From positions 1-52,845 of the forward strand of contig NW_021835522.1 of assembly GCF_006345805.1 (NCBI RefSeq): a DNA stretch of 52,845 nucleotides, given 5' to 3'. Below the pieces are notes generated by a model. It was not told the DNA's origin, ran no database searches, and saw nothing but the letters and a program-made list of their open reading frames with translations. Origin of the DNA: Octopus sinensis. Its lineage: Eukaryota. Position numbers and translations under genes: made by a program. This document shows positions 1,206 through 52,590 of the stretch, piece by piece. Numbering within the stretch: the first letter of the stretch is position 1; each line of letters opens with the position of its first letter.

Positions 1206-1772
1206 CTTTAAATTGGATGGAAAACGAAATAGACAAACCAAACATCTCTAGGCATGTCCTGATTGGACCCATTATCTTCCCCAACAAATATGGAGCCTGT
1301 GTCAAAATAACAAATCAATATTATGATTATTATCAGTGTCAAGTCATACTGCCAAAAGTTTGAGTCTTTAGTTAAAGAAATCTGATGAGTCATCAGTTTC
1401 AGTCAAAGCTTTAAATATCTACAATGCTATTAATATCAGCTCTAAAATCAAACTATCAACTATAGTAATAGAAGAGTTGCAAGCCAAAGAGGGAGCAGAT
1501 TACCTTGCCACTCAAAACTGCTAAAAATATAAGTTAAATCCATTTCAAATCATACCCTTTCAGCAAAAAGGAAGACTGACACAGTGGAATAATAAAGTCT
1601 TCTAATAAGTATGTAAATACAGGAAAATAAAGACTGGATTACATACGTTCATAGACCTGTTCTATCAGGGCTAATAGGGGATAAACAACAACATATTTAA
1701 TAACATCAACAGTAATGACAACAACAAAAGAAAAAAAAAAAAATTATTGTTCTATCGAAATGAAGAACAAAC

Positions 1773-1861
1773 CTGTCATTTTTGTCTTCATCTTCTTCAT
1801 TTGAATTTTTGAGTTTTGTTTGGTAAGCTTTTGCCATAATATCTGCTGCTCGACCAGAATC
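1773..1861 (-). CDS. Internal exon of TRPM-family channel (SLOG/MHR region): DSGRAADIMAKAYQTKLKNSNEEDEDKND
   Basis: Acceptor tttttcttttaattatcAG, donor GTttgt, 89 nt (phase 0 in, phase 2 out). Continues IPVVIVK from exon 10093-10202 to give the TRPM-type IPVVIVKxSGRAAD motif. Confidence 0.88.
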
Positions 1862-2010
1862 CTGATAATTAAAAGAAAAACTTTAATGAATTCCTTAAAG
1901 TTAAATTTTCAGATATAAAGTAATCTAAGAATGAACAAATATTTTTAAAAATCTTTTAAAATTCACACATACAATCAAATAAAGATGTTTTGTTGTTTGT
2001 AAAGGTACTA

Positions 2011-8990: not shown

Positions 8991-10092
8991 TCAGTTCCAC
9001 TCGCATTAATATATTATCATTCATTCGTGTTCAAATGACTGTCTCTACTGGAAGTAAGTGTAGTACAAGCATTGTCATTATAAGCACCATTAATACAAAC
9101 ATAAATGGGTAAATAATGAAAATTAAGAAAACAGCTAATTGGTTAATTCATTACAAGTAGAAAGAAAAGAAAAAGGTAGTTTCTTAATTGACTAAAAAGT
9201 AACAAGGTCTCATTTCAGTACATGCATAAATGTAGATGAGACAACTGGTGGAGGCAGAGGCATGAGGTGTTTCTGTTACAAAGGAGAGATTTCTGTAATA
9301 TGTTGTGGTGGAGGCAGAAATAGTTTGGCACATCGTGTATAAGGAAGGCCAGAAAGACTGCACTTTTCTGAGCCATAAGGAGACAAAGGAAGAACAGAGA
9401 AATCAGAGAAGAAAGATTGTAAATAGTGGTAGGCCTACAATTATGTTAATTCGAGACTAGGAAGAGTTACAGGTAGTACACAGAAGATGAATTAGGTGGT
9501 GCAAAAAATTAAAGTGATGGGTCAAAGGCCAAGGAGCACATCTAATGAACAACAAAATTATGAGAAATGAAATCCAATTACAGGTGGGTTAGTGTTTTGT
9601 AAGGTAGAAATGCAAAGAGATGAATGATGTATAACTAAGGTGAAGAAGAAGCAACACTTTGCTGGTCATTTCATTACACATGGAAATTAGCGAGTGGTGT
9701 AATTTCAAGGACCATTAATGTACGAGGGGGTTCATATAAAGTAGCAACAAGAAGGAAAACAGAAGAGGTTGACCACTGGCAATGGCAAATAAATTACTAT
9801 TTTTGGTTGAAAGACAGATTTTTAAAAGAATATTTGTTATAAAATACTCTGAATTAAGTACATATAAAGTCATTCATCCAATAGAGACAGTCATAAGATT
9901 TAAGCAGTTGACCAGAAAACCAAAAACCGGAAAATCATTAAATAAAATATTTATGGAAAATTCTGCACCAACAAAATACTCATATAATCCTTCCTTTTAC
10001 TTTTCTTAACCACAAGCTTCTTCAGATATGCAAACATTATGAACTGAATAAACTCTCAGTAACCTTATTTACATAATAGTCTATTTACTGAC

Positions 10093-10202
10093 CTTTACTA
10101 TTACAACTGGGATGTTGCGTGATATTGAATCATACACTGACTTCAGAGTTTCCAGTTCACCTCCAACCAATACTACAACAGCTGGAATCTTGACTTCTCT
10201 CT
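10093..10202 (-). CDS. Internal exon of TRPM-family channel: (E)REVKIPAVVVLVGGELETLKSVYDSISRNIPVVIVK
   Basis: Acceptor ttttctgctgtaatttTAG, donor GTcagt, 110 nt (phase 1 in, phase 0 out). Matches the TRPM SLOG pattern IP-V-VV-GG...IPVVIV. Confidence 0.9.
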
Positions 10203-10605
10203 CTAAAATTACAGCAGAAAATATGAATTGATTAAGAAAAAATATATATATAATTAAATTATGAAATATGCCTGATTAAGGTAAAACATATCTAGTTAGT
10301 TATAAAACATATACATGATTAAATTTTTAAATATACCTGGTTAAAGTAGAAGGTATAACCAGATCATGGTGTAATGCATACCTGGTTAAAGTACAAAACA
10401 TACCTGATTGAGGTAAAAATATATAAATGATTAAAGTAAAATGTATATCTTTTTAATTATATCTTAATAATAAAATATAACTGATTCTAAAATACATCTC
10501 ACATTAAGTATAACCTCATTTAGGTCTAAAATGTATAAAGTATGACTTGACTAGAATATAAAGTTTAGCATAAGTTCAGGTTTTAGAAAACATAAATCAA
10601 TACCA

Positions 10606-20320: not shown

Positions 20321-20477
20321 CTGGAATATTCATTTCTGCAATAGTATATTCAAACATTCTTCTGAACTTATCTGGAGTACCATTTTCAACAAGGATAAAA
20401 TGTGAATGATTAGGATCCAAGTCATACAGCCATGCGAAAGGATTATCCCTTCTAAAATTCCTTACATACTGCGATCT
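20321..20477 (-). CDS. Internal exon of TRPM-family channel: RSQYVRNFRRDNPFAWLYDLDPNHSHFILVENGTPDKFRRMFEYTIAEMNIP
   Basis: Acceptor ttgatttgatttcTAG, donor GTaagt, 157 nt (phase 1 out, G+AG=Glu into exon 10093-10202). LDPNHSHFILV is a TRPM/SLOG hallmark. Confidence 0.92.
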
Positions 20478-29474: not shown

Positions 29475-29595
29475 AACGTATATATATATACATATACATA
29501 TATATACATATATATACATATATATATACATATACATATATATACATATATATACATATATATACATATATATACACATATATACATATATATAC

Positions 29596-29632
<37 letters not shown>

Positions 29633-29770
29633 TATATACATATTTATACATATATATATACATATATATATATACATATATATATATACATATAATATAT
29701 ACATATAATATACAATATATATATACATATATATACATATATATATACATATATATATACACATATATAA
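29475..29770. repeat. (TA)n/(TACA)n microsatellite
   Basis: Direct reading. Confidence 0.95.
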
Positions 29771-29771
29771 T

Positions 29772-32207: not shown

Positions 32208-32560
32208 ACTGCTTTCAATTTTTTGTTTAGGCGATTTGAAATTTTTGTACGCCGTCTCATTAAAATTTCCTCTCTCTGGGGATTTTGTTCTTGTGTACAG
32301 TGGCTTTCTCTCTGGGACACATTTGTAGCATATGGCTTGCATTACAGACATGAATTGTTGAAGCCTCACGTCGATGTCTGGCGAGGAGAGACATTCAGCC
32401 AGTTTTGTTGAGGATCTCTTTCTCAATTTGTTCCAGTTGCCTTATGGTAGTTCAAGCTGGAAAGATTCTGAGGGTTTCTTGTAGGCTGCATGTCCATGCT
32501 TTCATTGGCCCGTACAGGGTCAGCTCTACCATGTTGTGATCCGAGAGTAGTGTCGGTGTT
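32208..32560 (-). mobile_element. Short inverted fragment of CR1-like family A (EN-RT linker)
   Basis: Reverse complement of ~50170-50535 (TPTLLSDHNMVELT, NYHKA.W, CYKCVPE). Confidence 0.88.
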
Positions 32561-32561
32561 A

Positions 32562-32616
32562 CTACTATACATATACATATACATATAGAATATACTATAT
32601 ATATATATAAATATAC

Positions 32617-32654
<38 letters not shown>

Positions 32655-33068
32655 TACATATATATACATATATACATATATACACATATATACATATATA
32701 CACCATATATACATATACACAGATATAACATTATATACATATATACATATATATATACATATTACATATATATACATATATACATATATATACATATATA
32801 TACATATATACATATATATACATATATACATATATACATATATATACATATATATACATATATACATATATATACATAATACATATATATACATATATAC
32901 ATATATGACATATATACATATATATATATAGATATATAGATATATATTATATAATATATACATATACAAATATATATATAAATACATATATATATACATA
33001 TATACATATATAATATACATATATACATATAATATATATATATATATATCTTTATATATATATATATA

Positions 33069-33127
<59 letters not shown>
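32562..33127. repeat. ~570-bp (TA)n/(TACA)n microsatellite at the left border of the satellite
   Basis: Direct reading. Confidence 0.95.
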
Positions 33128-36100
33128 TTGTCTCTTCACTTCTCCACTACTGTCACATTCTCTTCTCTCACCTTCTCATCTCTCTCTTTCAGCCATTCAA
33201 TCTTCCTTGTCTCTTCACTTCTCCACTTCTCTGTCACAATCTCTCCTCTCTCACCTTCTCATCTCTCTTCTTTCAGCCATTCAATCTTCCCTTGTTTCTT
33301 CACTTCTCCACTTCTCTGTCACAATCTCTCCTTCTCATCTCTCTTCTTTAGGCCAGTCAATCTTTACTTCCCTCTATCACACCATCTCTCTTCTTTCAGC
33401 CATTCAATCTTCCCTTGTCTCTTCACTTCTCCACTTCTCTGTCACAATCTCTCCTCTCTCAACTTCTCATCTCTCTTCTTTCAGCCATTGAATCTTTACT
33501 TCTCTCTATCACACCATCTCTCTTCTTTCAGCCATTCAATCTTCCTTTGTCTCTTCACTTCTCCACTTCTCTGTCACAATCTCTCCTCTCTCACCTCCTC
33601 ATCTCTCATCTTTCAGCCATTCAATCTTCCTTTGTCTCTTCACTTCTCCACTTCTCTGTCACAATCTCTCCTCTCTCACCTCCTCATCTCTCATCTTTCA
33701 GCCATTCAATCTTTACTTCTCTCTATCACACCATCTCTCTTCTTTCAGCCATTCAATCTTCCTTTGTCTCTTCACTTCTCCACTTCTCTCTGTCACAATC
33801 TCTCCTCTCTCACCTTCTCATCTCTCTTCTTTCAGCCATTCAATCTTTCTTTGTCTCTTCACTTCTCCACTTCTCTGTCACAATCTCTCCTCTCTCACCT
33901 TCTCATCTCTTTTCTTTCAGCCATTCAATCTTTACTTCTCTCTATCAAACCATCTCTCTTCTTTCAGCCATTCAATCTTCCCTTGTCTCTTCACTTCTCC
34001 ACTTCTCTGTCACAATCTCTCCTCTCTCACCTTCTCATCTCTCTTCTTTCAGCCATTCAATCTTCCCTTGTCTCTTCACTTCTCCACTTCTCTGTCACAA
34101 TCTCTCCTCTCTCACCTTCTCATCACTCTTCTTACAGCCATTCAATCTTTACTTCTCTCTATCACACAATCTCTCTTCTTTCAGCCATTCAATCTTCCCT
34201 TGTCTCTTCACTTCTCCACTTCTCTGTCACAATTTCTCCTCTCTCACCTTCTCATCTCTCTTCATTCAGCCATTCAATCTTCCCTTGTCTCTTCACTTCT
34301 CCACTTCTCTGTCACAATCTCTCCTCTCTCACCTTCTCATCTCTCTTCTTTCAGCCATTCAATCTTCCTTTGTCTCTTCACTTCTCCACTTCTCTGTCAC
34401 AATCTCTCCTCTCTCACCTTCTCATCTCTCTTCTTTCAGCCATTCAAACTTTACTCATCTCTATCACACCATCTCTCTTCTTTCAGCCATTCAATCTTCC
34501 CTTGTCTCTTCACTTCTCCACTTCTCTGTCACAATCTATCCTCTCTCACCTCCTCATCTCTCTTTTTTCAGCCATTCAATCTTTACATCTCTCTATCACA
34601 CCATCTCTCTTCTTTCAGCCATTCAATCTTCCCTTGTCTCTTCACTTCTCCACTTCTCTGTCACAATCTCTCCTCTCTCACCTCTCATCTCTCTTCTTTC
34701 AGCCATTCAATCTTTACTTCTCTCTATCACACCATCTCCTCTTTCAGCCATTCAATCTTCCCTTGTCTCTTCACTTCTCCACTTCTCTGTCACAATCTCT
34801 TCTCTCTCACATTCTCATCTCTCTTCTTTCAGCCATTCAATCTTTACTTCTCTCTATCACATCCTCTCTTCTTTCAGCCATTCATTCTTCCCTTGTCTCT
34901 TCACTTCTCCACTGCTCTGTCACAATCTCTCCTCTCTCCCCCTTCTCATCTCTCTTCTTTCAGCATTTTCATCTTTACTTCTCTCTATCACATCATCTCT
35001 CTTCTTTCAGCCATTCATTCTTCCCTTGTCTCTTCACTTCTCCACTGCTCTGTCACAATCTCTCCTCTCTCACCTTCTCATCTCTCTTCTTTCAGCCATT
35101 CAATCTTCCCTTGTTTCTTCACTTCTTCCACTTCTCTGTCACAATCTCTCCTTCTCATCTCTCTTCTTTAGGCCAGTCAATCTTTACTTCCCTCTATCAC
35201 ACCATCTCTCTTCTTTCAGCCATTCAATCTTCCTTTCTCTTCACTTCTCCACTCTCTCTGTCACAATCTCTCCTCTCTCAACTTCTCATCTCTCTTCTTT
35301 CAGCCATTGAATCTTTACTTCTCTCTATCACACCATCTCTCTTTTTTCAGCCATTCAATCTTCCTTTGTCTCTTCACTTCTCCCTTCTCTGTCACAATCT
35401 CTCCTCTCTCACCTCCTCATCTCTCATCTTTCAGCCATTCAATCTTCCTTTGTCTCTTCACTTCTCCACTTCTCTGTCACATCTCTCCTCTTCACCTCCT
35501 CATCTCTCATCTTTCAGCCATTCAATCTTTACTTCTCTCTATCACACCATCTCTCTTCTTTCAGCCATTCATCTTCCTTTGTCTCTTCACTTCTCCACTT
35601 CTCTCTGTCACAATCTCTCTCCTCTCTCACCTTCTCATCTCTCTTCTTTCAGCCATTCAATCTTTCTTTGTCTCTTCACTTCTCCACTTCTCTGTCACAA
35701 TCTCTCCTCTCTCTCACCTTCTCATCTCTTTTCTTTCAGCCATTCAATCTTTACTTCTCTCTATCAAACCATCTCTCTTCTTTCAGCCATTCAATCTTCC
35801 TTGTCTCTTCACTTCTCCACTTCTCTGTCACAATCTCTCCTCTCTCACCTTCTCATCTCTCTTCTTTCAGCCATTCATCTTCCCTTGTCTCTCACTTCTC
35901 CACTTCTCTGTCACAATCTCTCCTCTCTCACCTTCTCATCACTCTTCTTACAGCCATTCAATCTTTACTTCTCTCTATCACACACATCTCTCTTCTTTCA
36001 GCCATTCAATCTTCCCTTGTCTCTTCTTCACTTCTCCACTTCTCTGTCACAATTTCTCCTCTCTCACCTTCTCATCTCTCTTCATTCAGCCATTCAATCT

Positions 36101-39100
36101 TCCCTTGTCTCTTCACTTCTCCACTTCTCTGTCACAATCTCTCCTCCTCACCTTCTCATCTCTCTTCTTTCAGCCATTCAATCTTCCTTGTCTCTTCACT
36201 TCTCCACCACTTCTGTCACAATCTCTCCTCTCTCACCTTCTCATCTCTCTTCTTTCAGCCATTCAAACTTTACTCATCTCTATCACACCATCTCTCTCTT
36301 CTCAGCCATTCAATCTCCCTTGTCTCTTCTTCACTTCTCCACTTCTCTGTCACAATCTATCCTCTCTCACCTCCTCATCTCTCTTTTTTCAGCCATTCAA
36401 TCTTTACATCTCTCAATCACACACATCTCTCTCTCTTCATCTTCTTTTCATCCCTTCAATCTTCCCTTGTCTCTTCACTTCTCCACTTCTCTGTCACATC
36501 TCTCCTCTCTCACCTCCTCATCTCTCTTTTTTCAGCAAGCCATTCAATCTTTACTTCTCTCTATCAACACCATCTCTCTTCTTTCAGCCATTCAATCTTC
36601 CCTTGTCTCTTCACTTCTCCACTTCTCTGTCACATCTCTCCTCTCTCACCTCATCATCTCTCATTTTTCAGCCATTCAATCTTTACTTCTCTCTATCACA
36701 CCATCTCTCTTCTTTCAGCCATTCAATCTTCCCTTGTCTCTTCACTTCTCCACTTCTCTGTCACAATCTCTCCTCTCTCACCTCCTCATCTCTCTTTTTT
36801 CAGCCATTCAATCTTTACTTCTCTCTATCACACCATCTCTCTTCTTTCAGCCATTCAATCTTCCCTTGTCTCTTCACTTCTCCACTTCTCTGTCACAATC
36901 TCTCCTCTCTCACCTCCTCATCTCTCTTCTTTCAGCCATTCAATCTTTACTTCTCTCTATCACACCATCTCTCTTCTTTCAGCCATTCAATCTTCCCTTG
37001 TCTCTTCACTTCTCCACTTCTCTGTCACAATCTCTTCTCTCTCACATTCTCATCTCTCTTCTTTCAGCCATTCAATCTTTACTTCTCTCTATCACATCAT
37101 CTCTCTTCTTTCAGCCATTCATTCTTCCCTTGTCTCTTCACTTCTCCACTGCTCTGTCACAATCTCTCCTCTCTCACCTTCTCATCTCTCTTCTTTCAGC
37201 CATTCAATCTTTACTTCTCTCTATCACATCATCTCTCTTCTTTCAGCCATTCATTCTTCCCTTGTCTCTTCACTTCTCCACTGCTCTGTCACAATCTCTC
37301 CTCTCTCACCTTCTCATCTCAATTCTTTCAGCCATTCAAACTTTACTTCTCTCTATCACAACATCTCTCTTCTTTCAGCCATTCAATCTTCCCTTGTCTC
37401 TTCACTTCTCCACTTCTCTGTCACAATCTCTCCTCTCTCACCTTCTCATCTCTCTTCTTTCAGCCATTCAATCTTTACTTCTCTCTATCACACCATCTCT
37501 CTTCTTTCAGCCATTCAATCTTCCATTGTCTCTTCACTTCTCCACTTCTCTGTCACAATCTCTCCTCTCTCACCTTCTCATGTCTCTTCTTTCAGCCATT
37601 CAATCTTTCTTTGTCTCTTCACTTCTCCACATCTCTGTCACAATCTCTCCTCTCTCACCTTCTCATCTCTCTTCTTTCAGCCATTCAATCTTTACTTCTC
37701 TCTATCACACCATCTCTCTTCTTTCAGCCATTCAATCTTCCCTTGTCTCTTCACTTCTCCACTTCTCTGTCACAATCTCTCCTCTCTAACCTTCTCATCT
37801 CTCTTCTTTCAGCCATTCAGTCTTTCTTTGTCTCTTCACTTCTCCACTTCTCTCTCACAATCTCTCCTCTCTCACCTCCTCATCTCTCTTTTTTCAGCCA
37901 TTCAATCTTTACTTCTCTCTATCACACCATCCCTCTTCTTTCAGCCATTCAATCTTCCCTTGTCTCTTCACTTCTCCACTTCTCTGTCACAATCTCTCCT
38001 CTCTCACCTCCTCATCTCTCTTTTTTCAGCCATTCAATCTTTACATCTCTCTATCACACCATCTCTCTTCTTTCAGCCATTCAATCTTCCCTTGTCTCTT
38101 CACATCTCCACTTCTCTGTCACAATCTCTCCTCTCTCACCTCCTCATCTCTCATTTTTCAGCCATTCAATCTTTACTTCTCTCTATCACACCATCTCTCT
38201 TCTTTCAGCCATTCAATCTTCCCTTGTCTTTTCACTTCTCCACTTCTCTGTCACAATCTCTCCTCTCTCACCTCCTCATCTCTCTTTTTCAAGCCATTCA
38301 ATCTTTACTTCTCTCTATCACACCATCTCTCTTCTTTCAGCCATTCAATCTTCCCTTGTCTCTTCACTTCTCCACTTCTCTGTCACATTCTCTCCTCTCT
38401 CACCTCCTCATCTCTCTTCTTTCAGCCATTCAATCTTTACTTCTCTCTATCACACCATCTCTCTTCTTTCAGCCATTCAATCTTCCCTTGTCTCTTCACT
38501 TCTCCACTTCTCTGTCACAATCTCTTATCTCTCACGTTCTCATCTCTCTTCTTTCAGCCATTCAATCTTTAATTCTCTCTATCACACCATCTCTCTTCTT
38601 TCAGGCATTCATTCTTCCCTTGTCCCTTCACTTCTCCACTTCTCTGTCACAATCTCTCCTCTCTCACCTTCTCATCTCTCTTCTTTCAGCCATTCAAACT
38701 TTACTTCTCTCTATCACACCATCTCTCTTTTTTCAGCCATTCAATCTTCCCTTGTCTCTTCACTTCTCCACTTCTCTGTCACACTCTCTCCTCTCTCACC
38801 TCCTCATCTCTCTTTTTTCAGCCATTCAATCTTTACTTCTCTCTATCACACCATCTCTCTTTTTCAGCCATTCAATCTTCCCTTGTCTCTTCACTTCTCC
38901 ACTTCTCTGTCACAATCTCTCCTCTCTCACCTACTCATCTCTCTTTTTTCAGCCATTCAATCTTTACTTCTCTCTATCACACCATCTCTCTTCTTTCAGC
39001 CAATCAATCTTCCCTTGTCTCTTCACTTCTCCACTTCTATGTCACAATCACTCCTCTCTCACCTCCTCATCTCTCTTCTTTCAGCCATTCAATCTTCCTT

Positions 39101-42100
39101 TGTCTCTTCACTTCTCCACTTCTCTGTCACAATCTCTCCTCTCTCACCTTCTCATCTCTCTTCTTTCAGCCATTTAATCTTTATTTCTCTCTATCACACC
39201 ATCTCTCTTCTTTCAGCCATTCAATCTTCACTTGTCTCTTCACTTCTCCACTTCTCTGTCACAATCTCCCTTCTCTCACCTTCTCATCACTCTTCTTTCA
39301 GCCATTCAATCTTCCTTTGTCTCTTCACTTCTCCACTTCTCTGTCACAATCTCTACTCTCTCACCTTCTCATCTCTCTTCTTTCAGCCATTCAATTTTAC
39401 TTCTCTCTATCACACCATCTCTCTTCTTTCAGCCATTCAATCTTCCCTTGTCTCTTCACTTCTCCACTTCTCTGTCACAATCTCTCCTCTCTCACCTTCT
39501 CATCTCTCTTCTTTCAGCCATTCAATCTTCCATTGTCTCTTCACTTCTCCACTTCTCTGTCACAAACTCTCCTCTCTCACCTTCTCATCTCTCTTCTTTC
39601 AGCCATTCAATCTTTACTTCTCTCTATCACACCATCTCTCTTCTTTCAGCCATTCAATCTTCCCTTGTCTCTTCACTTCTCCACTTCTCTGTCACAATCT
39701 CTCCTCTCTCACCTTCTCATCTCTCTTCTTTCAGCCATTCAATCTTCCTTTGTCTCTTCACTTCTCCACTTCTCTGTTACAATCTCCTCTCTCACTTCTC
39801 ATCTCTCTTCTTTCAGCCATTCAATCTTCCTTTGTCTCTTCACTTCTCCACTTCTCTGTCACAATCTCTCCTCTCTCACCTTCTCATCTCTCTTCTTTCA
39901 GCCATTCAATCTTCCTTTGTCTCTTCACTTCTCCACTTCTCTGTCACAATCTCTCCTCTCTCACCTTCTCATCTATCATTTTTCAGCAATTCAATCTTTA
40001 CTTCTCTCTATCACACCATCTCTCTTCTTTCAGCCATTGAATCTTCCCTTGTCTCTTCACTTCTCCACTTCTCTGTCACAATCTCTCCTCTCTCACCTCC
40101 TCATCTCTCTTTTTTCAGCCATTCAATCGTTACTTCTCTCTATCTCACCATCTCTCTTCTTTCAGCCATTCAATCTTCCCTTGTCTCTTCACTTCTCCAC
40201 TTCTCTGTCACAATCTCTCCTCTCTCACCTCCTCATCTCTCTTCTTTCAGCCATTCAATCTTTACTTCTCTCTATAACACCATCTCTCTTCTTTCAGCCA
40301 TTCAATCTTCCCTTGTCTCTTCACTTCTCCACTTCTCTGTCACAATCTCTTCTCTCTCACATTCTCATCTCTCTTCTTTCAGCCATTCAATCTTTACTTC
40401 TCTCTATCACACCATCTCTCTTCTTTCAGCCATTCATTCTTCCCTTGTCTCTTCACTTCTCCACTTCTCTGTCACACTCTCTCCTCTCTCACCTCCTCAT
40501 CTCTCTTTTTTCAGCCATACAATCTTTACTTCTCTCTATCACACCATCTCTCTTCTTTCAGCCATTCAATCTTCCGTTGTCTCTTCACTTCTCCACTTCT
40601 CTGTCACAATCTCTCCTCTCTCACCTCCTCATCTCTCTTTTTTCAGCCATTCAATCTTTACTTCTCTCTATCACACCATCTCTCTTCTTTCAGCCATTCA
40701 ATCTTCCCTTGTCTCTTCACTTCTCCACTTCTATGTCACGATCTCTCCTCTCTCACCTCCTCATCTCTCTTCTTTCAGCCATTCAATCTTCCTTTGTCTC
40801 TTCACTTCTCCACTTCTCTGTCACAATCTCTCCTCTCTCACCTTCTCATCTCTCTTCTTTCAGCCATTCAATCTTTCTTTGTCTCTTCACTTCTCCACTT
40901 CTCTGTCACAATCTCTCCTCTCTCACCTTCTCATCTCTCTTCTTTCAGCCATTCAATCTTTACTTCTCTCTATCACACCATCTCTCTTCTTTCAGCCATT
41001 CAATCTTCCTTGTCTCTCACTTCTCCACTTCTCTGTCACAATCTCTCCTCTCTCACCTTCTCATCTCTCTTCTTTCAGCCATTCAATCTTCCCTTGTCTC
41101 TTCACTTCTCCACTTCTCTGTCACAACTCTCTCTCTCACCTTCTCATCTCTCTTCTTTCAGCCATTCAATCTTTACTTCTCTCTATCACACCATCTCTCT
41201 TCTTTCAGCCATTCAATCTTCCTTTGTCTCTTCACTTCTCCACTCTCTGTCACAATCTCTTCTCTCTCACATTCTCATCTCTCTTCTTTCAGCCATTCAA
41301 TCTTACTTCTCTCTATCACACATCTCTCTTCTTTCAGCCATTCAATCTTCCCTTGTCTCTTCACTTCTCCACTCTCTCTCTGTCACAATCTCTCCTCTCT
41401 CACCTTCTCATCACTCTTCTTTCAGCCATTCAATCTTTACTTCTCTCTATCACACAATCTCTCTTCTTTCAGCCATTCAATCTTCCCTTGTCTCTTCACT
41501 TCTCCACTTCTCTGTCACAATTTCTCCTCTCTCACCTTCTCATCTCTCTTCTTTCAGCCATTCAATCTTCCCTTGTCTCTTCACTTCTCCACTTCTCTGT
41601 CACAATCTCTCCTCTCTCACCTTCTCATCTCTCTTCTTTCAGCCATTCAATCTTCCTTTGTCTCTTCACTTCTTCACTTCTCTGTCACAATCTCTCCTCT
41701 CTCACCTTCCCATCTCTCTTCTTTCAGCCATTCAATCTTCCTTTGTCTCTTCACTTCTCCACTTCTCTGTCACAATCTCTCCTCTCTCACCTTCTCATCT
41801 CTCTTCTTTCAGCCATTCAATCTTCCCTTGTCTTTTCACTTCTCCACTTCTCTGTCACAATCTCTTCTCTCTCACCTTCTCATCTCTCTTCTTTCAGCCA
41901 TTCAATCTTCGCTTGTCTCTTCACTTCTCCACTTCTCTGTCACAATCTCTCCTCTCTCACCTTCTCATCTCTCTTCTTTCAGCCATTCAATCTTCCCTTG
42001 TCTCTTCACTTCTCCACTTCTCTGTCACAATCTCTCCTCTCTCACCTTCTCATCTCTCATCTTTCAGCCATTCAAACTTCCCTCGTCTCTTCACTTCTCC

Positions 42101-45100
42101 ACTTCTCTGTCACCATCTCTCCTCTCTCACCTTCTCATCTCTCTTCTTTCATCCATTCAATCTTCCCTTGTCTCTTCACTTCTCCACTTCTCTGTCACAA
42201 TCTCTTCTCTCTCACCTTCTCATCTCTCTCCTTTCAGCCATTCAATCTTTACTTCTCTCTATCACACCATCTCTCTTCTTTCAGCCATTCAATCTTCCTT
42301 TGTCTCTTCACTTCTCCACTTCTCTGACACTATCTCTCCTCTCTCACCTTTTTATCTCTCTTCTTTCAGCCATTCAATCTTCCTTTGTCTCTTCACTTCT
42401 CCACTTCTCTGTCACAATCTCTTCTCTCTCACCTTCTCATCTCTCTTCTTTCAGCCATTCAATCTTTACTTCTCTCTATCACACCATCTCTCTTCTTTCA
42501 GCCATTCAATCTCCCTTTGTCTCTTCACTTCTCCACTTCTCTGTCACAATCTCTTCTCTCTCACCTTCTCATCTCTCTTCTTTCAGCCATACAATCTTTA
42601 CTTCTCTATATCACACCATCTCTCTTCTTTCAGCCATTCAATCTTCCCTTGTCTCTTCACTTCTCCACTTCTCTGTCACAATCTCTCCTCTCTCATCACC
42701 TCATCTCTCTTCTTTCAGCAATTAAATCTTCCCTTGTCTCTTCACTTCTCCACTTCTCTGTCACAATCTCTTCTCTCTCACCTTCTCATCTCTCTCCTTT
42801 CAGCCATTCAATCTTTACTTCTCTCTATCACACCATCTCTCTTCTTTCAGCCATTCAATCTTCCCTTGTCTCTTCACTTCTCCACTTCTCTGTCACAATC
42901 TCTCCTCTCTCACCTCTTCTTCTCTCTTCTTTCAGCCATTCAATCTTCCCTTGTCTCTTCACTTCTCCACTTCTCTGTCACAATCTCTCCTCTCTCACCT
43001 TCTCATCTCTCTTCTTTCAGCCATTCAATCTTCCTTTGTCTCTTCACTTCTCCACTTCTCTGTCACAATCTTCCTCTCTCACCTTCTTATCTCTCTTCTT
43101 TCAGCCATTCAATCTTCCCTTGTCTCTTCACTTCTCCACTTCACTGTCACAATCTCCTCTCTCTCACCTTCTCATCTCTCTTCTTTCAGCCATTCAATCT
43201 TTACTTCTCTCTATCACACCATCTCTCTTCTTTCAGCCATTCAATCTTCCTTTGTCTCTTCACTTCTCCACTTCTCTGTCACAATCTCTCCGCTCTCACC
43301 TTCTTATCTCTCTTCTTTCAGCCATTCAATCTTCCTTTGTCTCTTCACTTCTCCACCTCTCTGTCTCAATCTCTTCTCTCTCACCTTCTCATCTCTCTTC
43401 TTTCAGCCATTCAATCTTTATTTCTCTCTATCACACCATCTCTCTTCTTTCAGCCATTCAATCTTCCTTTGTCTCTTCACTTCTCCACATTCTCTGTCAC
43501 AATCTCTTCTCTCTCACCTTTTCATCTCTCTTCTTTCAGCCATTCAATCTTTACTTCTCTCTATCACACCATCTCTCTTCTTTCAGCCATTCAATCTCCC
43601 TTTGTCTCTTCACTTCTCCACTTCTCTGTCACAATCTCTCCTCTCTCACCTTCTCATCTCTCTTCTTCAGCCATTCAATCTTTACTTCTCTATATCACAC
43701 CATCTCTCTTCTTTCAGCCATTCAATCTTCCCTTGTCTCTTCACTTCTCCACTTCTCTGTCACAATCTCTCCTCTCTCATCACCTCATCTCTCTTCTTTC
43801 AGCAATTAAATCTTCCCTTGTCTCTTCACTTCTCCACTTCTCTGTCACAATCTCTTCTCTCTCACCTTCTCATCTCTCTCCTTTCAGCCATTCAATCTTT
43901 ACTTCTCTCTATCACACCATCTCTCTTCTTTCAGCCATTCAATCTTCCCTTGTCTCTTCACTTCTCCACTTCTCTGTCACAATCTCTCCTCTCTCACCTC
44001 TTCTTCTCTCTTCTTTCAGCCATTCAATCTTCCCTTGTCTCTTCACTTCTCCACTTCTCTGTCACAATCTCTCCTCTCTCACCTTCTCACTCTCTTCTTT
44101 CAGCATTCAATCTTCCTTTGTCTCTCACTTCTCCACTTCTCTGTCACAATCTCTTCTCTCTCACCTTCTCATCTCTCTCCTTTCAGCCATTCAATCTTAC
44201 TTCTCTCTATCACACCATCTTTCTTCTTTCAGCCATTCATCTTCCCTTGTCTCTTCACTTCTCCACTTCTCTGTCACAATCTCCTCTCTCTCACTTCTCA
44301 TCTCTCTTCTTTCAGCCATTCAATCTTTACTTCTCTCTATCACACCATCTCTCTTCTTTCAGCCATTCAATCTTCCTTTCTCTCTTCACTTCTCCACTTC
44401 TCTGTCACAATCTCTCCTCTCTCACCTTCCCATCTCTCTTCTTTCAGCCATTCAATCTTCCTTTGTCTCTTCACTTCTCCACTTCTCTGTCACAATCTCT
44501 CCTCTCTCACCTTCTTTTCTCTCTTCTTTCAGCCATTCAATCTTCCATTGTCTCTTCACTTCTCCACTTCTCTGTCACCATCTCTTCTCTCTCACCTTCT
44601 CATCTCTCTTCTTTCAGCCATTCAATCTTCCTTTGTCTCTTCACTTCTCCACTTCTCTGTCAAAATCTCTTCTCTCTCACCTTCTCATCTCTCTTCTTTC
44701 AGCCATTCAATCTTCCTTTGTCTCTTCACTTCTCCACTTCTCTGTCACAATCTCTCCTCTCTCACCTTCTCATCTCTCTTCTTTCAGCCATTCAATCTTC
44801 CCTTGTCTCTTCACTTCTCCACTTCTCTGTCACAATCACTCCTCTCTCACCTTCTCATCTCTCTTCTTTCAGCCATTCAATCTTCCTTTGTTTCTTCACT
44901 TCTCCACTTCTCTGTCACAATCTCTCCTCTCTCACCTTCTCATCTCTCTCCTTTCTGCCATTCAATCTTTACTTCTCTCTATCACACCATCTTTCTTCTT
45001 TCAGCCATTCAATCTTCCATTGTCTCTTCACTTCTCCACTTCTCAGTCACAATCTCTCCTCTCTCACCTTCCCATCTCTCTTCTTTCAGCCATTCAATCT

Positions 45101-48100
45101 TCCTTTGTCTCTTCACTTCTCCACTTCTCTGTCAAAATCTCTCCTCTCTCACCTTCTCATCTCTCTTCTTTCAGCCATTCAATCTTCCCTTGTCTCTTCA
45201 CTTCTCCACTTCTCTGTCACAATATCTTCCCTCTCACCTTCTCATCTCTCTTCTTTCAGCCATTCAATCTTCCTTTGTCTCTTCACTTCTCCACTTCTCT
45301 GTCACTATCTCTCCTCTCTCACCTTTTTATCTCTCTTCTTTCAGCCATTCAATCTTCCTTTGTCTCTTCACTTCTCCACTTCTCTGTCACAATCTCTTCT
45401 CTCTCATCTTCTCATCTCTCTTCTTTCAGCCATTCAATCTTTACTTCTCTCTATCACACCATCTCTCTTCTTTCAGCCATTCAATCTTCCCTTGTCTCTT
45501 CACTTCTCCACATCTCTGTCACAATCTCTCCTCTCTCACCTCTTCTTCTCTCTTCTTTCAGCCATTCAATCTTCCCTTGTCTCTTCACTTCTCCACTTCT
45601 CTGTCACAATCTCTCCTCTCTCACCTTCTCATCTCTCTTCTTTCAGCCATTCAATCTTCCTTTGTCTCTTCACTTCTCCACTTCTCTGTCACAATCTCTC
45701 CTCTCTCACCTTCTTATCTCTCTTCTTTCAGCCATTCAATCTTCCCTTGTCTCTTCACTTCTCCACTTCACTGTCACACTCTCGTCTCTCTCACCTTCTC
45801 ATCTCTCTTCTTTCAGCCATTCAATCTTTACTTCTCTCTATCACACCATCTCTCTTCTTTCAGCCATTCAATCTTCCTTTGTCTCTTCACTTCTCCACTT
45901 CTCTGTCACAATCTCTCCTCTCTCACCTTCTTATCTCTCTTCTTTCAGCCATTCAATCTTCCATTGTCTCTTCACTTCTCCACCTCTCTGTCTCAATCTC
46001 TTCTCTCTCACCTTCTCATCTCTCTTCTTTCAGCCATTCAATCTTTACTTCTCTCTATCACACCATCTCTCTTCTTTCAGCCATTCAATCTCCCTTTGTC
46101 TCTTCACTTCTCCACTTCTCTGTCACAATCTCTTCTCTCTCACCTTCTCATCTCTCTTCTTTCAGCCATACAATCTTTACTTCTCTATATCACACCATCT
46201 CTCTTCTTTCCGCCATTCAATCTTCCCTTGTCTCTTCACTTCTCCACTTCTCTGTCACAATCTCTCCTCTCTCATCACCTCATCTCTCTTCTTTCATCAA
46301 TTAAATCTTCCTTGTCTCTTCACTTCTCACTTCTCTGTCACAATCTCTTCTCTCTCACCTTCTGATCTCTCTCCTTTCAGCCATTCAATCTTTACTTCTC
46401 TCTATCACACCATCTCTCTTCTTTCAGCCATTCAATCTTCCCTTGTCTCTTCATTTCTCCACTTCTCTGTCACAATCTCTCCTCTCTCACCTCTTCTTCT
46501 CTCTTCTTTCAGCCATTCAATCTTCCCTTGTCTCTTCACTTCTCCACTTCTCTGTCACAATCTCTCCTCTCTCACCTTCTCATCTCTCTTCTTTCAGCCA
46601 TTCAATCTTCCTTTGTCTCTTCACTTCTCCACTTCTCTGTCACAATCTCTCCTCTCTCACCTTCTTATCTCTCTTCTTTCAGCCATTCAATCTTCCCTTG
46701 TCTCTTCACTTCTCCACTTCTCTGTCACAATCTCCTCTCTCTCACCTTCTCATCTCTCTTCTTTCAGCCATTCAATCTTTACTTCTCTCTATCACACCAT
46801 CTCTCTTCTTTCAGCCATTCAATCTTCCCTTGTCTTCACTTCTCCACTTCTCTGTCACAATCTCTCCTCTCTCACCTCTTCTTCTCTCTTCTTTCAGCCA
46901 TTCAATCTTCCCTTGTCTCTTCACTTCTCCACTTCTCTGTCACAATCTCTCCTCTCTCCCTTCTCATCTCTCTTCTTTCAGCCATTCAATCTTCTTTTGT
47001 CTCTTCACTTCTCCACTTCTCTGTCACAATCTCTCCTCTCTCACCTTCTTATCTCTCTTCTTTCAGCCATTCAATCTTCCTTTGTCTCTTCACTTCTCCA
47101 CTTCTCTGTCACAATCTCCTCTCTCTCACCTTCTCATCTCTCTTCTTTCAGCCATTCAATCTTTACTTCTCTCTATCACACCATCTCTCTTCTTTCAGCC
47201 ATTCAATCTTCCTTTGTCTCTTCACTTCTCCACTTCTCTGTCACAATCTCTCCTCTCTCACCTTCTTATCTCTCTTCTTTCAGCCATTCAATCTTCCTTT
47301 GTCTCTTCACTTCTCCACTTCTCTGTCTCAATCTCTTCTCTCTCACCTTCTCATCTCTCTTCTTTCAGCCATTCAATCTTCCCTTGTCTCTTCACTTCTC
47401 CACTTCTCTGTCACAATCTCCTCTCTCTCACCTTCTCATCTCTCTTCTTTCAGCCATTCAATCTTTACTTCTCTCTATCACACAATCTCTCTTCTTTCAG
47501 CCATTCAATCTTCCCTTGTCTCTTCACTTCTCCACTTCTCCGTCACAATCTCTCCTCTCTCACCTTCTCATCTCTCTTCTTTCAGCCATTCAATCTTTAC
47601 TTCTCTCTATCACACCATCTCTCTTCTTTCAGCCATTCAATCTTCCTTTGTCTCTTCACTTCTCCACTTCTCTGTCACAATCTCTCCCCTCTCACCTTCT
47701 CATCTCTCTCCTTTCAGCCATTCAATCTTTTCTTCTCTCTATCACACCATCTCTCTTCTTTCAGCCATTCAATCTTCCCTTGTCTCTTCACTTCTCCATT
47801 TCTCTCTGTCACAATCTTTCCTTTCTCACCTTCTCATCTCTCTTCTTTCAGCCATTCAATCTTCCCTTGTCTCTTCACTTCTCCACTTCTCTGTCACAAT
47901 CTCTCCTCTCTCACCTTCTCATCTCTCTTCTTTCAGCCATTCAATCTTCCCTTGTCTCTTCACTTCTCCACTTCTCTGTCACAATCTCTCCTCTCTCACC
48001 TTCTTATCTCTCTTCTTTCAGCCATTCAATCTTCTTTTGTCTCTTCACTTCTCCACTTCTCTGTCACAATCTCTTCTCTCTCACCTTCTCATCTCTCTCC

Positions 48101-48490
48101 TTTCAGCCATTGAATCTTTACTTCTCTCTTTCACACCATCTCTCTTCTTTCAGCCATTCAATCTTCCCTTGTCTCTTCACTTCTCCACTTCTCTGTCACA
48201 ATCTCTCCTCTCTCACCTTCTTATCTCTCTTCTTTCAGCCATTCAATCTTCCCTTGTCTCTTCACTTCTCCATTTCTCTCTGTCACAATCTTTCCTTTCT
48301 CACCTTCTCATCTCTCTTCTTTCAGCCATTCAATCTTCCTTTGTCTCTTCACTTCTCCATTTCTCTCTGTCACAATCTTTCCTTTCTCACCTTCTCATCT
48401 CTCTTCTTTCAGCCATTCAATCTTCCCTTGTCTCTTCACTTCTCCACTTCTCTCTGTCACAATCTTTCCTCTCTCACCTTCTCAATTTCT
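33128..48490. repeat. ~15.4-kb CT-rich satellite of two monomers (A 85 bp, B 47 bp) sharing the core ATCTCTCTTCTTTCAGCCATTCAATCTT
   Basis: A = core + CCCTTGTCTCTTCACTTCTCCACTTCTCTGTCACAATCTCTCCTCTCTCACCTTCTC; B = core + TACTTCTCTCTATCACACC. AB = 132 bp gives the 44-aa periodicity seen in the ORF track. Confidence 0.97.
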
Positions 48491-48653
48491 CTAAATATAT
48501 AGTCGTATAAATATATATCTTCTTATCTTCTCTCAGCTTTCAATCTCCCTAAATACACAGTCACTTTCTTTCTCTGCTTCTTCTCTGCCCTCTGTCACAC
48601 TATTGAATTTGTAACATAATTAGATAGATAAATAAATAGATAGATTATCCAAC

Positions 48654-49583
48654 ATGTCCAGAGCCTGGAGACCTGACGAACTGGCGTTGTTCGTACGAGC
48701 CTGGAAATGCGCCTACGGAGATAACCCTAACAATGTGATTACGGCTGCGCTGAAGAGCGGTAGCTACAAAAGGACGATAGCTCAGATAGAGCGAAAGAAA
48801 CAGGAATTCATGCGCTCCTATGCGCTTGTACGGTCGCACATTGGCACACTTGATGCCATCTTTGAGAACGCGCAGGGCAAAGATGGCAAGAATAGAGACG
48901 ATGAAAGAAGTCACCCCCACCTGGTGGACACCCGGGAAGATGTTTTGAGTGAGAAACCTGCCCAGGAAGTGAACCCAAGTGCAATTGCTCTAATCGGCAG
49001 CCAGGGCCATGGAGATGGACAACCCATGGAAGAAGTAGAGGGAGGAAGAACTAAAAGAAGGACTGAGAGAGCTAAAGGAAAAGCTCAAGCAGGACCAATG
49101 GGTGAAACAACCAGGAATAGAAGTGGAACCGCAAAGGATGGAAAAAAACAGCGCACACGGGTGTGTAGGTTCTACCTGAGAGGTACCTGCTGGCATGGAA
49201 AGGAAGGTGCAGGCTGCCGCTTTGCACATCGGAGACCCTGCTGCAGAGACACGAAACAGATAAACAAACCATCAACACAAGGAAAAAGGATGGACCACGC
49301 ACCACCTGCCCCAAAACGGAGGTACGCAGATGTGGTGCGTGCCACAAACCGCCAACATGATGTTGTTGAAAGGGCAGCTGCTGAGCAGCAACCTTTTTTG
49401 TGCATGGCACAAAAGATTGTACAGCAGCTGACCTGGCTTCATCAAACCCACCTCGCAGGTGGGACTACCCACTATATACAAGACCACCACAGCAAACAGA
49501 CCCAGGATGGACACCGCCGGCAACAACATACACCTCACCTCGATGCTCCTACTGAACATCAGAGGACTGCAAACACTCAGTAA
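48654..49583 (+). CDS. LINE ORF1 protein (309 aa): Myb/SANT-like N-terminus, CCCH zinc finger
   Basis: Open ATG-to-TAA frame. WRPDELALFVRAW..ITAALKSGSYKRTIAQIERK and C-x7-C-x8-C-x3-H (CRFYLRGTCWHGKEGAGCRFAH). Confidence 0.75.
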   Translation: MSRAWRPDELALFVRAWKCAYGDNPNNVITAALKSGSYKRTIAQIERKKQEFMRSYALVRSHIGTLDAIFENAQGKDGKNRDDERSHPHLVDTREDVLSEKPAQEVNPSAIALIGSQGHGDGQPMEEVEGGRTKRRTERAKGKAQAGPMGETTRNRSGTAKDGKKQRTRVCRFYLRGTCWHGKEGAGCRFAHRRPCCRDTKQINKPSTQGKRMDHAPPAPKRRYADVVRATNRQHDVVERAAAEQQPFLCMAQKIVQQLTWLHQTHLAGGTTHYIQDHHSKQTQDGHRRQQHTPHLDAPTEHQRTANTQ

Positions 49584-52489
49584 CAGGACAAAAATCCCGT
49601 TCTTGAGAGACTTTGTTGCATGCAATCAAGCCTTATGCATAGCACTTACGGAAACGCACCTGAAACCGGACATAGCAGATGCGGAGTTACACATACCACA
49701 GTATGTTGTACTACGGACCGACAGAAAAGAAAGGAGTCACGGAGGAGTTGCTATGTACATCCGTGAGGACCTCACACCCAGGTCCTCTTGTCATACTCAA
49801 ACTCGGTGTGTGACACACTAATTGTACATATAAGGCAACTTGATGTAGTTGTGTGTGCTACATATCGCCCTCCAGATGCCCCAAGCCATGTGGGCAAGTT
49901 TGAAGACTGCCTTATAAAAATAGAAGTTCTAATCACATTAGAACAACACATAAGTGTACTTCTTATGGGAGACTTCAATCTACCAATGTCAGATGGCCCG
50001 AGGGCCTTTCTCTCCCAGGAAAGACAAGATGTGAACGAGGACAGGCGAGGTCCCTCCTGAACCTCATCAACACCCTGTACATGGAGCAAGTAATACTCCA
50101 ACCAACCAGGGCAGGTAACACACTGGATCTCTGCTTCACAAATGACATGGATCTGATCCATAATGTGAAGGTGACACCGACACTACTCTCGGATCACAAC
50201 ATGGTATAGCTGACCATGTACGGGCCAAAAGAGAGCACGGACATGCAGCCTACAAGAAACCCTCAGAATCTTTCCAGCTTGAACTACCATAAGGCAAACT
50301 GGAAACAAATTGGGAAAGAGATCCTCAAACAAAACTGGCCTGATGTCTCTCCTCGCCAGACATCGACGTGAAACTTCAACAATTCATGTCTGTAATGCAA
50401 GCCATATGCTACAAATGTGTCCCAGAGAGAAAGGCCACTGTACACAGAACAAAATCCCCAGAGAGAGGAAAAATTTAATATGAGACGGCGTACAAAACAT
50501 TTCAAATCGCCTAAACAAACAGATTGAAAGCAGTCCCGCCTAAAAATAAAATGTTGTAAATTGAAAAATGTCTGCAAATCTCCAATGAAAAGGAAAGAGC
50601 AGACAAAGAAGCCTGGGCTATAGACAACATAAAATCTAACCCCAGAGCTTTCTACAGGTATGCCAAAGAAACAGCTACTGTGCACTGTAGAATAGGGCCA
50701 CTCCTTGAAAAGGTTGGCACACTCACAGGAAAACCAATGAGGGTAAGTGAAATACTGAATGAGCAATTCAAGAGTGTTTTCACTCCACCCCTTGGGCATC
50801 TCCAAATCACCAATCCAACTGACTTCTTTACCACTGCAGATATAAAATCAGTGGCAGCGACGATAGATTACATCGATATAAAGGAAGACGATGTAATAAA
50901 GGCTATAGATGAAATGAAAACAGACTCAGATACTGGCCCCGATGGATTCCCGGCAATCCTCCTAAAAGCATGTAAGAGAGTCTTAGCAAGACCACTGCAG
51001 TTCCTCTTTCAGAGCTTCCTTGCAGCTGGCAAACTTCCAAGAAAACTGAAGGAAGGTAAAATATGCCCCATTCATAAAGGAGGTAGCAGAGCGGAGGCCA
51101 AGAACTACAGACCTATCTCTCTGACCTCACACATCAGCAAGGTCATGGAACGAATAGTCAGAAGGAAACTGATCACCTTCCTTGAAGAAAATGACTTGCT
51201 ACCCGACACCCAACATGGGTTACGACCAGGGAGAAGCTGCTTAACTCAGCTCCTACAACACTATGACTGGGTGTTGAAAGGCTGCTCAACCACTCAAATG
51301 TGGAAGTGATATATCTCGACTTTGCAAAGGCCTTTGATAAAGTCGATCATGGAATGATATATCACAAACTGCGTGATCTCAACATAGTTGGAAAACTGGG
51401 AGAATGGCTTCATGACTTTCTGAAAGATAGAAGTCAGGTGGTAGTAGGGGCCACTTCCATTAACACGCAAATAGTGAGCGGTGTTCCGCAGGGCACAGTT
51501 CTGGGACCACTACTGTTCATAATGGCCCTCTCAGACATGCCCTCAGCCACGCAGACAGCCACGATCACAAGTTATGCAGATGATACAAAAGTTTCACAGG
51601 AAATACAGAACCCTGAGGACACTAAACGCCTGCAATGTGAGCTGGACAAAATATACAAGTGGGCAGAAAAGAATAGCATGCAGTTCAATGCTGAAAAGTT
51701 TCAAACTTTATACTATAAGCATGCAAAACTAAATGCAATACCCAATGAATACACTGGACCCGGAGGAATAGCAATCCCAGAGGCACAATCAGTGCGTGAC
51801 CTGGGTATTTACATGAGTAATGACGCAACCTTTCGTGTACATGTTGCTAAATTGGCAATGAAATGTAGAAGACTGGCCACATTGATTCTCAGAACCTTTA
51901 GAACAAGAGAACAAGAAACCATGATGGTCCTCTGGAGGACACTTGTCCTAAGCCACTTTGACTATTGCTCTCAGTTATGGTCACCATCCAGTGTCAAGTT
52001 GATCAGAGAGCTCGAGGCGATCCAGCGTAGCTACACGAAGAAGATAGCCTCTATGCAGAATGTAAGCTACTGGGAAAGACTCAAGAGATTAAAACTATAT
52101 TCCTTGGAGCGTAGGCGGGAAAGATATGCCATAATATACATCTGGAAGATCCTGGAGGGACGTGTCCCAAACTTTGGCATCGAGAGTTACACAAATGCCA
52201 GAACTGGGCGCCACTGCGTGGTGCCTAGGACTCCAAATTTGCCATCAAGATGTAGGACAAGATACTGCTGATACTGGATAGTTGGGCTCCGAGGCCCACT
52301 GCTCTTCAATATCCTCCCGAAGAACCTGAGAGACCTGCATGGGGTGGATGCAGATGTCTTTAAAATGGAACTGGATCTCTTCCTGTCAGTGTCCCAGATG
52401 AACCAACTTCACGGCAGGAGGTGCAGATGAGGGCAGCTGCATCGAACTCTCTCATGCACCAAATGGCAGTTGCTAAAAAGCTTTCGTGA
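49543..52489 (+). pseudogene. LINE ORF2 (APE endonuclease + RT), disrupted by several frameshifts/stops
   Basis: Pieces 49459-49821, 49788-50060, 50680-51309 and 51300-52271 in different frames. Predicted natural stop TGA at 52487-52489. Confidence 0.9.
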
Positions 52490-52590
52490 GGTAAAACCAA
52501 GTAGCAACACCAAATGGCGGTGCCCCAGCATGGCCACAGCTCATGAGCTGAAAGTAGAATCAATCAATCAATCAATCAATACATACATAC

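Follow-up and report, generated by a model that had tools for sequence, protein, structure and literature searches.

A CT-rich tandem array of two related monomers in a probable intron of an octopod TRPM-like gene

The window analyzed here, a stretch of 52,845 nucleotides from Octopus sinensis, contains a single unbroken tandem array of 15.4 kb that is built from 212 monomers of two types. The array is probably a non-coding repeat of the satellite or large-minisatellite type that grew in place, in a ≥32-kb intron of an octopod multi-SLOG (TRPM-like) gene. It seems to behave as an ordinary, recently amplified satellite and not as a triplex-forming or otherwise functional element. The word satellite is applied on the basis of one array and covers both satellite and large-minisatellite types; in the strict sense, it denotes a family that occurs in many or long arrays and makes up a measurable fraction of a genome.

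Architecture and unit order of the array

The two monomers, which we call A (85 bp) and B (47 bp), lie head to tail, and their copies are highly similar to one another: mean pairwise identity is 94% among A copies and 95% among B copies, and identity to consensus is ~97% (Table 1). The monomer count was anchored on CAGCCATTCAATCT, successive anchors lying 85 ± 5 bp or 47 ± 3 bp apart. Under this anchoring, five units were odd: two were double units whose anchor was mutated, two were A monomers cut to 76 and 77 bp, and one was a B variant of 59 bp. TRF likewise reported one array, at ~33.2–48.4 kb, with periods of 47, 85, 132, and 217 and scores of 5200–7200. An initial annotation of this DNA had described a 15.4-kb two-monomer array with strong strand asymmetry and had put the number of 85- and 47-bp monomers at about 200, and both descriptions agree with our measurements. 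It had also noticed a core common to A and B. The core is indeed shared, but it measures 29 bp (CATCTCTCTTCTTTCAGCCATTCAATCTT) rather than the 28 bp given there.

On the + strand, the base composition of the array is 14.7% A, 39.1% C, 3.35% G, and 42.9% T, which amounts to 82% pyrimidine and a G+C content of 42%. The GC skew of this strand is about –0.84 in all 1-kb windows of the array, versus ~0 ± 0.3 in the rest of the window. The left edge of the array (33127/33128) adjoins a 560-bp (TA)n microsatellite. The right edge lies at ~48492, and past an AT-rich spacer of ~27 bp there follows a decayed monomer-like stretch. The window contains no N bases.

The order of the monomers is constrained. 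No BB adjacency was observed versus 23.4 expected, and none of 20,000 shuffles reached zero. Because B never adjoins B, the array is really composed of two building blocks, the 85-bp A and the 132-bp AB. Self-match lags are dominant at 85, 132, and 217 bp, and there is no enrichment at 47 bp. The (AB)n and A-rich runs are found where the initial annotation had located them, and the right half is rich in A monomers; the binary pattern of A and B that was proposed there is, however, not a free one, since two B monomers are never neighbors. In addition, several polymorphic columns distinguish A monomers beside B from those within runs of A; the Fisher p values (down to 1e-6) are inflated by shared ancestry, although the direction is plain. 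Thus, AB spreads as a unit of its own.

On a larger scale, pairs of blocks of ~1–1.5 kb within the array are 96–97% identical, against a background of 94–95%. A strict higher-order repeat, with a fixed multi-monomer period, was not found in the array: self-match peaks fall only at 85, 132, and 217 bp and at small sums of these, and the long-range matches are isolated blocks. Identity between A monomers is nearly flat with distance (0.950 to 0.944), which argues that amplification or homogenization was recent. The transition/transversion ratio in the monomers is 1.74, the per-site rates of change are 0.0093 from pyrimidine to purine and 0.0127 from purine to pyrimidine, and the substitution pattern looks neutral.

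Table 1. Features of the array and its surroundings (positions in the window)
Feature	Positions	Strand	Description
Tandem array	33128..48492	+ (CT-rich strand)	141 A (85 bp) + 71 B (47 bp)
A monomer			consensus, 85 bp: CAGCCATTCAATCTTCCCTTGTCTCTTCACTTCTCCACTTCTCTGTCACAATCTCTCCTCTCTCACCTTCTCATCTCTCTTCTTT
B monomer			consensus, 47 bp: CAGCCATTCAATCTTTACTTCTCTCTATCACACCATCTCTCTTCTTT
Longest (AB)n run	36171..37507	+	(AB)10, 132-bp dimers
Second (AB)n run	37810..38996	+	(AB)9
Longest pure A run	41470..42234	+	9 x 85 bp
A runs	44360..45426	+	A x7, then A x5
Block duplication	41881..43418, copied at 45460-46993	+	97.2% over 1.5 kb
Block duplication	36538-38041 / 38028-39529	+	similar pair
Block duplication	33176-34610 / 34993-36432	+	similar pair
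(TA)n microsatellite	32566..33127	.	left border of array
Decayed monomer-like stretch	48519..48611	+	outside array
LINE, near-complete	48654..52519	+	same strand as CT-rich array
LINE ORF1	48654..49583	+	intact
LINE fragment, same family	32208..32562		just left of array; inverted relative to LINE at 50171-50534
Predicted host exon, SLOG domain	20322..20477	-	residues 652-703 of O. vulgaris P0124, 86.5% identity; donor CCAG/gtaagt next
Predicted host exon, next	10087..10209	-	P0124 residues 702-742, 80% identity; splice phase fits the 20322..20477 exon
Predicted host exon, third	1769..1864	-	P0124 residues 740-771, 84% identity

Host gene and searches for other copies

Homology assigns the predicted host gene, which is encoded on the minus strand, to the octopod TRPM-like genes of the multi-SLOG family. 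The window covers three internal exons of this gene. Together they match residues 652–771 of a homologue from Octopus vulgaris (860 aa), and when two of them are spliced, their product matches the SLOG family LSDAT_euk at 48.5 bits (E = 1e-12; cut-off, 25.7). Six-frame inspection and tblastn with six Octopus homologues gave no host exon from 20.5 kb to the end of the window. Because the exons found are internal and none lies above 20.5 kb, the array almost certainly sits within an intron that measures 32 kb or more, upstream of the host exon that encodes "...YDLDPNHSHFILVENGTPDKF..."; the next upstream exon is located beyond the window, and the intronic position is judged from homologue architecture. 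The intronic position in a TRPM-like gene that had been suggested earlier is thus supported. Since the CT-rich + strand is antisense to this gene, a GA-rich pre-mRNA would be expected, also as the initial annotation had it.

The host may be very large, since the seven closest gene models (P0122–P0126, P0128, and P0129, from O. vulgaris or O. sinensis) span 180–320 kb. The ion-channel identity that the initial annotation had proposed is a possibility only. In the closest homologues (P0121–P0125), the gene models contain only SLOG domains. P0125 is followed on its own strand, after 111 bp, by an Ion_trans gene model, and the 3' part of the host falls beyond the window.

Within the window, no monomer copies were found outside the array. 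Two paralogous TRPM-like loci (L002, 99 kb, from O. vulgaris and L003, 54.5 kb, from O. bimaculoides) gave only chance CT-rich matches to the monomers, and the O. vulgaris locus has an intronic minisatellite of its own (66 bp x 25). Rfam yielded no match at the gathering threshold across the window, and the literature contained no relevant octopus or cephalopod satellite resembling the array, the core string being absent from the texts of 8.4 million papers. The most frequent 25-mer and 31-mer of the array are absent from the JGI metagenome contigs and IMG/VR, and the protein collection contained no relative, but these metagenome, viral, and protein negatives are weak because the source species is evidently absent from the collections (the best database match of the neighboring LINE reverse transcriptase is 72% identical). 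As the initial annotation had supposed, then, the array seems to be undescribed so far. The catalogue of cephalopod tandem repeats has barely begun, and the literature on cephalopod satellites offered nothing relevant.

Origin and growth

We propose that the array descends from an ~85-bp founder sequence that would have been CT-rich, G-poor, and CpG-free. B may be a shortened derivative in which the 29-bp core is joined to a single segment of 18 bp, alignable to the middle of A; if it arose beside an A, the 132-bp AB dimer would have resulted. The pattern of copies suggests that A, AB, and kilobase blocks were multiplied by out-of-register exchange or replication slippage. Exchange would require homology longer than the 29-bp core, such that crossovers would be resolved inside or across A units, and for this reason B would always be flanked by A. 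The avoidance of BB could thereby serve as a natural read-out of the homology length that unequal exchange needs. The strand asymmetry would be the legacy of the founder monomer, copied 212 times; selection would have no part in its upkeep, and no function is required. The host would have to transcribe an additional ~15 kb of GA-rich intronic RNA and remove it by splicing.

Growth in place leaves one fact as a coincidence, namely that a LINE on the same strand begins 160 bp from the right edge. Alternatively, the array could belong to a dispersed family with many copies, or a mobile element could have brought it. Tandem monomers occur at the 5' ends of LINEs in mouse L1, and mollusc satellites are commonly transposon-derived. 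By analogy, the array could consist of amplified 5'-end (UTR/promoter) repeats of the adjacent LINE, or of an internal repeat of another mobile element, that expanded after insertion. The local arrangement speaks for such an origin: as with the mouse L1-type monomers, the array immediately precedes a LINE ORF1 (ATG at 48654) and shares its strand, the decayed monomer lies between the two, and a fragment from the family of this LINE is found just left of the array. That fragment, however, forms no recognizable transposon structure around the array, and a search for flanking inverted repeats gave only (TA)n self-matches. Unlike the mouse monomers, moreover, the array greatly exceeds every LINE 5' UTR in length; at 15 kb, it is ~4 times the length of the LINE itself, whose endonuclease/reverse transcriptase ORF2 is split across several frames. 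No monomer occurs in the 153 kb examined from O. vulgaris and O. bimaculoides, DNA that does contain related repeats. Nor does any occur elsewhere in the window despite two further LINE pieces, although these end at the equivalent of position 48834, before the 5' end, and are uninformative on 5' monomers. On balance, an origin from a transposon seems unlikely.

Strand asymmetry, function, and comparison with known systems

The initial annotation had linked the asymmetry of the array to triplex DNA and R-loops. H-DNA needs homopurine/homopyrimidine mirror repeats, and its effects are lost when these are interrupted (PMC11667243). In the array, 18% of the bases on the pyrimidine strand are purines, with an interruption mostly every 13 nt or less. 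Pure pyrimidine runs are typically 7 or 13 nt and at most 22 nt long, and only 13 in the 15 kb reach 15 nt. All-pyrimidine mirror repeats with a spacer of up to 8 nt number zero for arms of at least 10 nt and one for arms of at least 8 nt. As for R-loops, G exceeds C on the transcript strand (+ strand skew, –0.83 to –0.85), but G+C is only 42%, and G-cluster initiation motifs (at least three G3+ clusters with short gaps) are absent from the RNA-like strand, where 95 G3 runs are isolated and only two G4 runs occur. The triplex/R-loop idea is thus weak. The array resembles the pyrimidine-rich element of PKD1 intron 21 and the (GAA)n of FXN intron 1 in being intronic and in having strong purine/pyrimidine asymmetry between its strands, but those tracts are near-perfect mirror repeats (PMC11667243).

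The array might nevertheless act as a functional cis element of the host gene that slows or pauses polymerase through RNA:DNA hybrids, recruits U1 or SR-type factors, or nucleates chromatin marks. The gene-sense RNA would be 82% purine and rich in G over C, and the minus strand carries 123 AGGTGAG and 94 AAGGTGAGA motifs and no acceptor-like sites (pyrimidine tract plus AG); AGGUGAG is a U1-type 5' splice-site motif. There are also precedents, in the effects of intronic purine-rich repeats on expression (FXN GAA and PKD1 PyRE; PMC11667243) and in the satellite-filled introns of Drosophila (PMC6508621). Against these points stand the interruptions and the lack of long mirror repeats and G-cluster motifs described above. 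Further, the substitution spectrum gives no sign that pyrimidine content is protected, and there is no evidence of conservation. Such a role therefore appears decidedly unlikely. In a stronger version, the array would be under selection as part of giant octopus introns: more than 120 strong U1-type motifs (AAG/GUGAGA) and dense GA-rich protein-binding sequence, with no acceptors, would form a U1/SR loading platform or an element controlling transcription speed or RNA:DNA hybrids. If true, the array would protect or tune the expression of a gene that extends over hundreds of kilobases, but we regard this as very improbable indeed.

Two further explanations concern the array itself. Units that are ~95% identical are hard to assemble, and the assembled length or internal order of a real array could be wrong through expansion or mis-joining; this is very unlikely, as the sequence has no gaps and contains many distinct variants in coherent, non-identical blocks, as expected of long-read-resolved sequence and not of a collapsed or looped one. 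The other explanation, that the + strand encodes a repetitive Ser/Leu/Phe-rich protein, draws on stop-free stretches of 1288–3306 codons and is effectively refuted: the consensus is free of TAA, TAG, and TGA, which leaves all three + frames open simultaneously (the minus strand has ~400 stops per frame), neither 85 nor 47 bp is a multiple of 3 and the frame rotates from unit to unit, array translations have no Pfam match, and a 130-aa array translation has no homologue among 5.8 billion proteins (72–228-aa range searched).

Considered as a satellite grown in place, the array has relatives in kind. Composite or dimeric satellites of two related monomers are exemplified by the left/right dimer of Drosophila Responder and by dimeric A/B-type alpha satellite. 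As in these, the monomers share a core, the dimer (here the 132-bp AB) itself amplifies, and evolution would proceed by unequal exchange, with local block duplications. In contrast to them, the two monomers here differ almost two-fold in length (85 versus 47 bp), single A monomers are mixed freely with AB, there is no fixed higher-order period, and the setting is a genic intron.

With respect to setting, the gigantic introns of the Drosophila Y-linked genes kl-3 and kl-5 (PMC6508621) offer a parallel, in that a tandem repeat within an intron of a very large gene would give purine-rich repeat RNA. There, however, the repeats extend over megabases and consist of simple 5–7-mers, compared with 15 kb of complex 85/47-bp monomers here.

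Beyond its annotation value, the array gives no pointer to new biology: a structural-DNA mechanism fails the standard sequence criteria considered above, and the substitutions look neutral. Its clean consensus and its grammar (A and AB, never BB) are a small addition to octopus repeat annotation, and the array is a convenient marker for length polymorphism.

Organization and growth of the array

The initial annotation had described a tandem array, and its base skew, Tandem Repeats Finder periods and monomer spacing establish that it is real and correctly placed, at window 33128–48492. Between 33 and 48 kb, each 1-kb interval has a GC skew of about −0.84 and an AT skew of about −0.5, versus values fluctuating around zero in the remainder of the gap-free window, and pyrimidines (39% C and 43% T) dominate the + strand, against 15% A and 3.35% G. 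Tandem Repeats Finder calls one array, with periods of 47, 85, 132 and 217 bp (scores 5200–7200). Using the anchor CAGCCATTCAATCT and resolving five odd spacings, we count 212 monomers, 141 of type A (85 bp) and 71 of type B (47 bp), which have in common a 29-bp core, CATCTCTCTTCTTTCAGCCATTCAATCTT; the 18 bp specific to B can be aligned with the middle of A. CpG is nearly absent (10 observed versus 201 expected) because the consensus lacks it.

The (AB)n and A-rich runs reported earlier were found where they had been located, but their order is not a free “binary pattern.” No BB junction occurs, against 23.4 expected (0 of 20,000 shuffles gave none), and base-level self-matches show peaks at 85, 132 and 217 bp and none at 47 bp. 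Thus, the building blocks are A and the 132-bp dimer AB. Several polymorphic columns distinguish A units touching B from those within A runs (p as low as 1e-6 by Fisher test, values inflated by shared descent), and AB multiplies as its own unit. There is no strict higher-order repeat in the array; only several internal duplications of 1–1.5 kb rise above background (96–97% versus 94–95% identity).

The array is recent or well homogenized: A-to-A identity is nearly flat with distance (0.950 to 0.944), and monomers are ~97% identical to the consensus throughout, falling only at the extreme right edge. Substitutions relative to the consensus look neutral, with Ts/Tv of 1.74, C-to-T exceeding T-to-C, and similar per-site rates for pyrimidine-to-purine (0.0093) and purine-to-pyrimidine (0.0127) changes. 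There is thus no sign that pyrimidine richness is under protection; the monomers inherit it from their founder, and the strand asymmetry calls for no explanation of its own. New purines in the monomers are nearly all A and seldom G (95 pyrimidine-to-A versus 18 pyrimidine-to-G changes), consistent with an AT-biased mutation spectrum.

From this pattern, we infer that the array grew by unequal exchange or slippage, which, if it needed homology longer than the 29-bp core, would yield the observed arrangement. With crossovers resolved inside A units or across them, every B would keep its flanking A; the array could gain or lose both A and AB, and would now and then duplicate a kilobase block.

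Coding potential and DNA structure

The array is non-coding. All three + frames are open simultaneously (1288–3306 codons), but only because neither consensus, A or B, contains TAA, TAG or TGA; the minus strand has ~400 stops per frame. The unit lengths shift the frame from one unit to the next, a 500-aa translation has no Pfam match, and a search of 5.8 billion proteins, in the 72–228 aa range, yielded no homologue of a 130-aa translation. A coding repeat is thereby effectively excluded. Rfam has no match at the gathering threshold anywhere in the window.

A triplex or R-loop mechanism had also been proposed. H-DNA requires homopurine/homopyrimidine mirror repeats, and its transcriptional effects are lost with interruptions (PMC11667243). 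In the array, uninterrupted stretches of pyrimidine usually measure 7 or 13 nt (longest, 22), and there are no all-pyrimidine mirror repeats with arms of at least 10 nt and no G-cluster R-loop initiation motif. GC skew is the sole structural property that agrees with the proposal, which these results leave weakly supported. The host pre-mRNA would carry ~15 kb of 82%-purine RNA, in which AGGUGAG occurs 123 times and acceptor-like sites are absent; any effect of this RNA on the host gene is speculation.

The host gene and its intron

Three minus-strand exons align to residues 652–771 of an 860-aa O. vulgaris “TRPM SLOG domain-containing protein” (80–87% identity), and their matches are to Octopus proteins only. 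The first two are consistent in splice phase, and their spliced product matches Pfam LSDAT_euk at 48.5 bits. The 20.4-kb exon is internal in all homologues, and neither inspection of all minus-strand open stretches nor tblastn found a host-family exon from 20.5 kb to the window end. Therefore, the array almost certainly lies within an intron, which would measure 32 kb or more; the initial annotation had placed it in a probable ion-channel intron. This length fits homologous gene models spanning 180–320 kb.

The gene is a member of an Octopus family with 2–4 tandem TRPM-type SLOG domains (P0121–P0129), and its nearest homologues are listed with SLOG domains alone. In O. vulgaris, one multi-SLOG model is followed after 111 bp, on the same strand, by the start of an Ion_trans/YVC1_C model; judging from such gene models, annotation may have divided what are single channel genes. 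An unrelated minisatellite lies in an intron of a paralogous TRPM-like 2 gene; intronic tandem arrays seem common in this family.

Relatives of the array and neighboring repeats

The array may be confined to this locus, belong to a dispersed family or stem from the neighboring LINE. No array-like sequence was found in the literature searched, metagenome or viral contigs, the protein collection or 153 kb of two Octopus genomes, null results that are weak evidence.

Features of the window and of the paralogous O. vulgaris locus (L002, OX597830.1)
Feature	Position	Strand	Remarks
Host-gene exon	20477–20322	minus	O. vulgaris homologue match
Host-gene exon	10209–10087	minus	O. vulgaris homologue match
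Host-gene exon	1864–1769	minus	O. vulgaris homologue match
(TA)n, 560 bp			left border of array
Decayed monomer, one	~48519–48611		right border of array
Adjacent LINE, near-complete	48654–52519	+ (strand of CT-rich array)	immediately right of array
ORF1 of adjacent LINE	48654–49583		309 aa, intact
Reverse transcriptase (RT) of adjacent LINE	51267–52268		best named match Argonauta hians, 62%
Same LINE family	21741–25293		rearranged
Same LINE family	32208–32562	inverted	355 bp, adjoins (TA)n left of array
Other LINE, endonuclease + RT	29476–32157	+	just left of array
Other LINE, RT-bearing	3110–4231	minus	
Other LINE, RT-bearing	7229–8886	minus	
SINE-like element, dispersed	210–551, 2183–2425, 25982–26232, 28740–29024; L002 23079–24030	both	
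367-bp unit × 2.2	12203–12998		96% identity, within (TA)n-rich sequence
Minisatellite, 66 bp × 25.5	L002 26259–27940		97% matches

ORF2 of the adjacent LINE is frameshifted. The three pieces of its family in the window are 90–93% identical; in the rearranged piece, the 3′ half (+) runs directly into the 5′ half in inverted orientation, which is not the arrangement expected of classical twin-priming inversion. The other LINE copies are unrelated to this family; in one of the two on the minus strand, the RT is followed by a weak PHD-like match. The SINE-like element contains an internal 62–66-bp tandem repeat; the element is up to 94% identical to O. vulgaris copies and at most ~86% to O. bimaculoides copies. 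The window is thus of octopod origin, and the SINE-like matches put its species near the O. vulgaris group. Long (TA)n and (TATATACA)n microsatellites together make up approximately 3 kb of the window.
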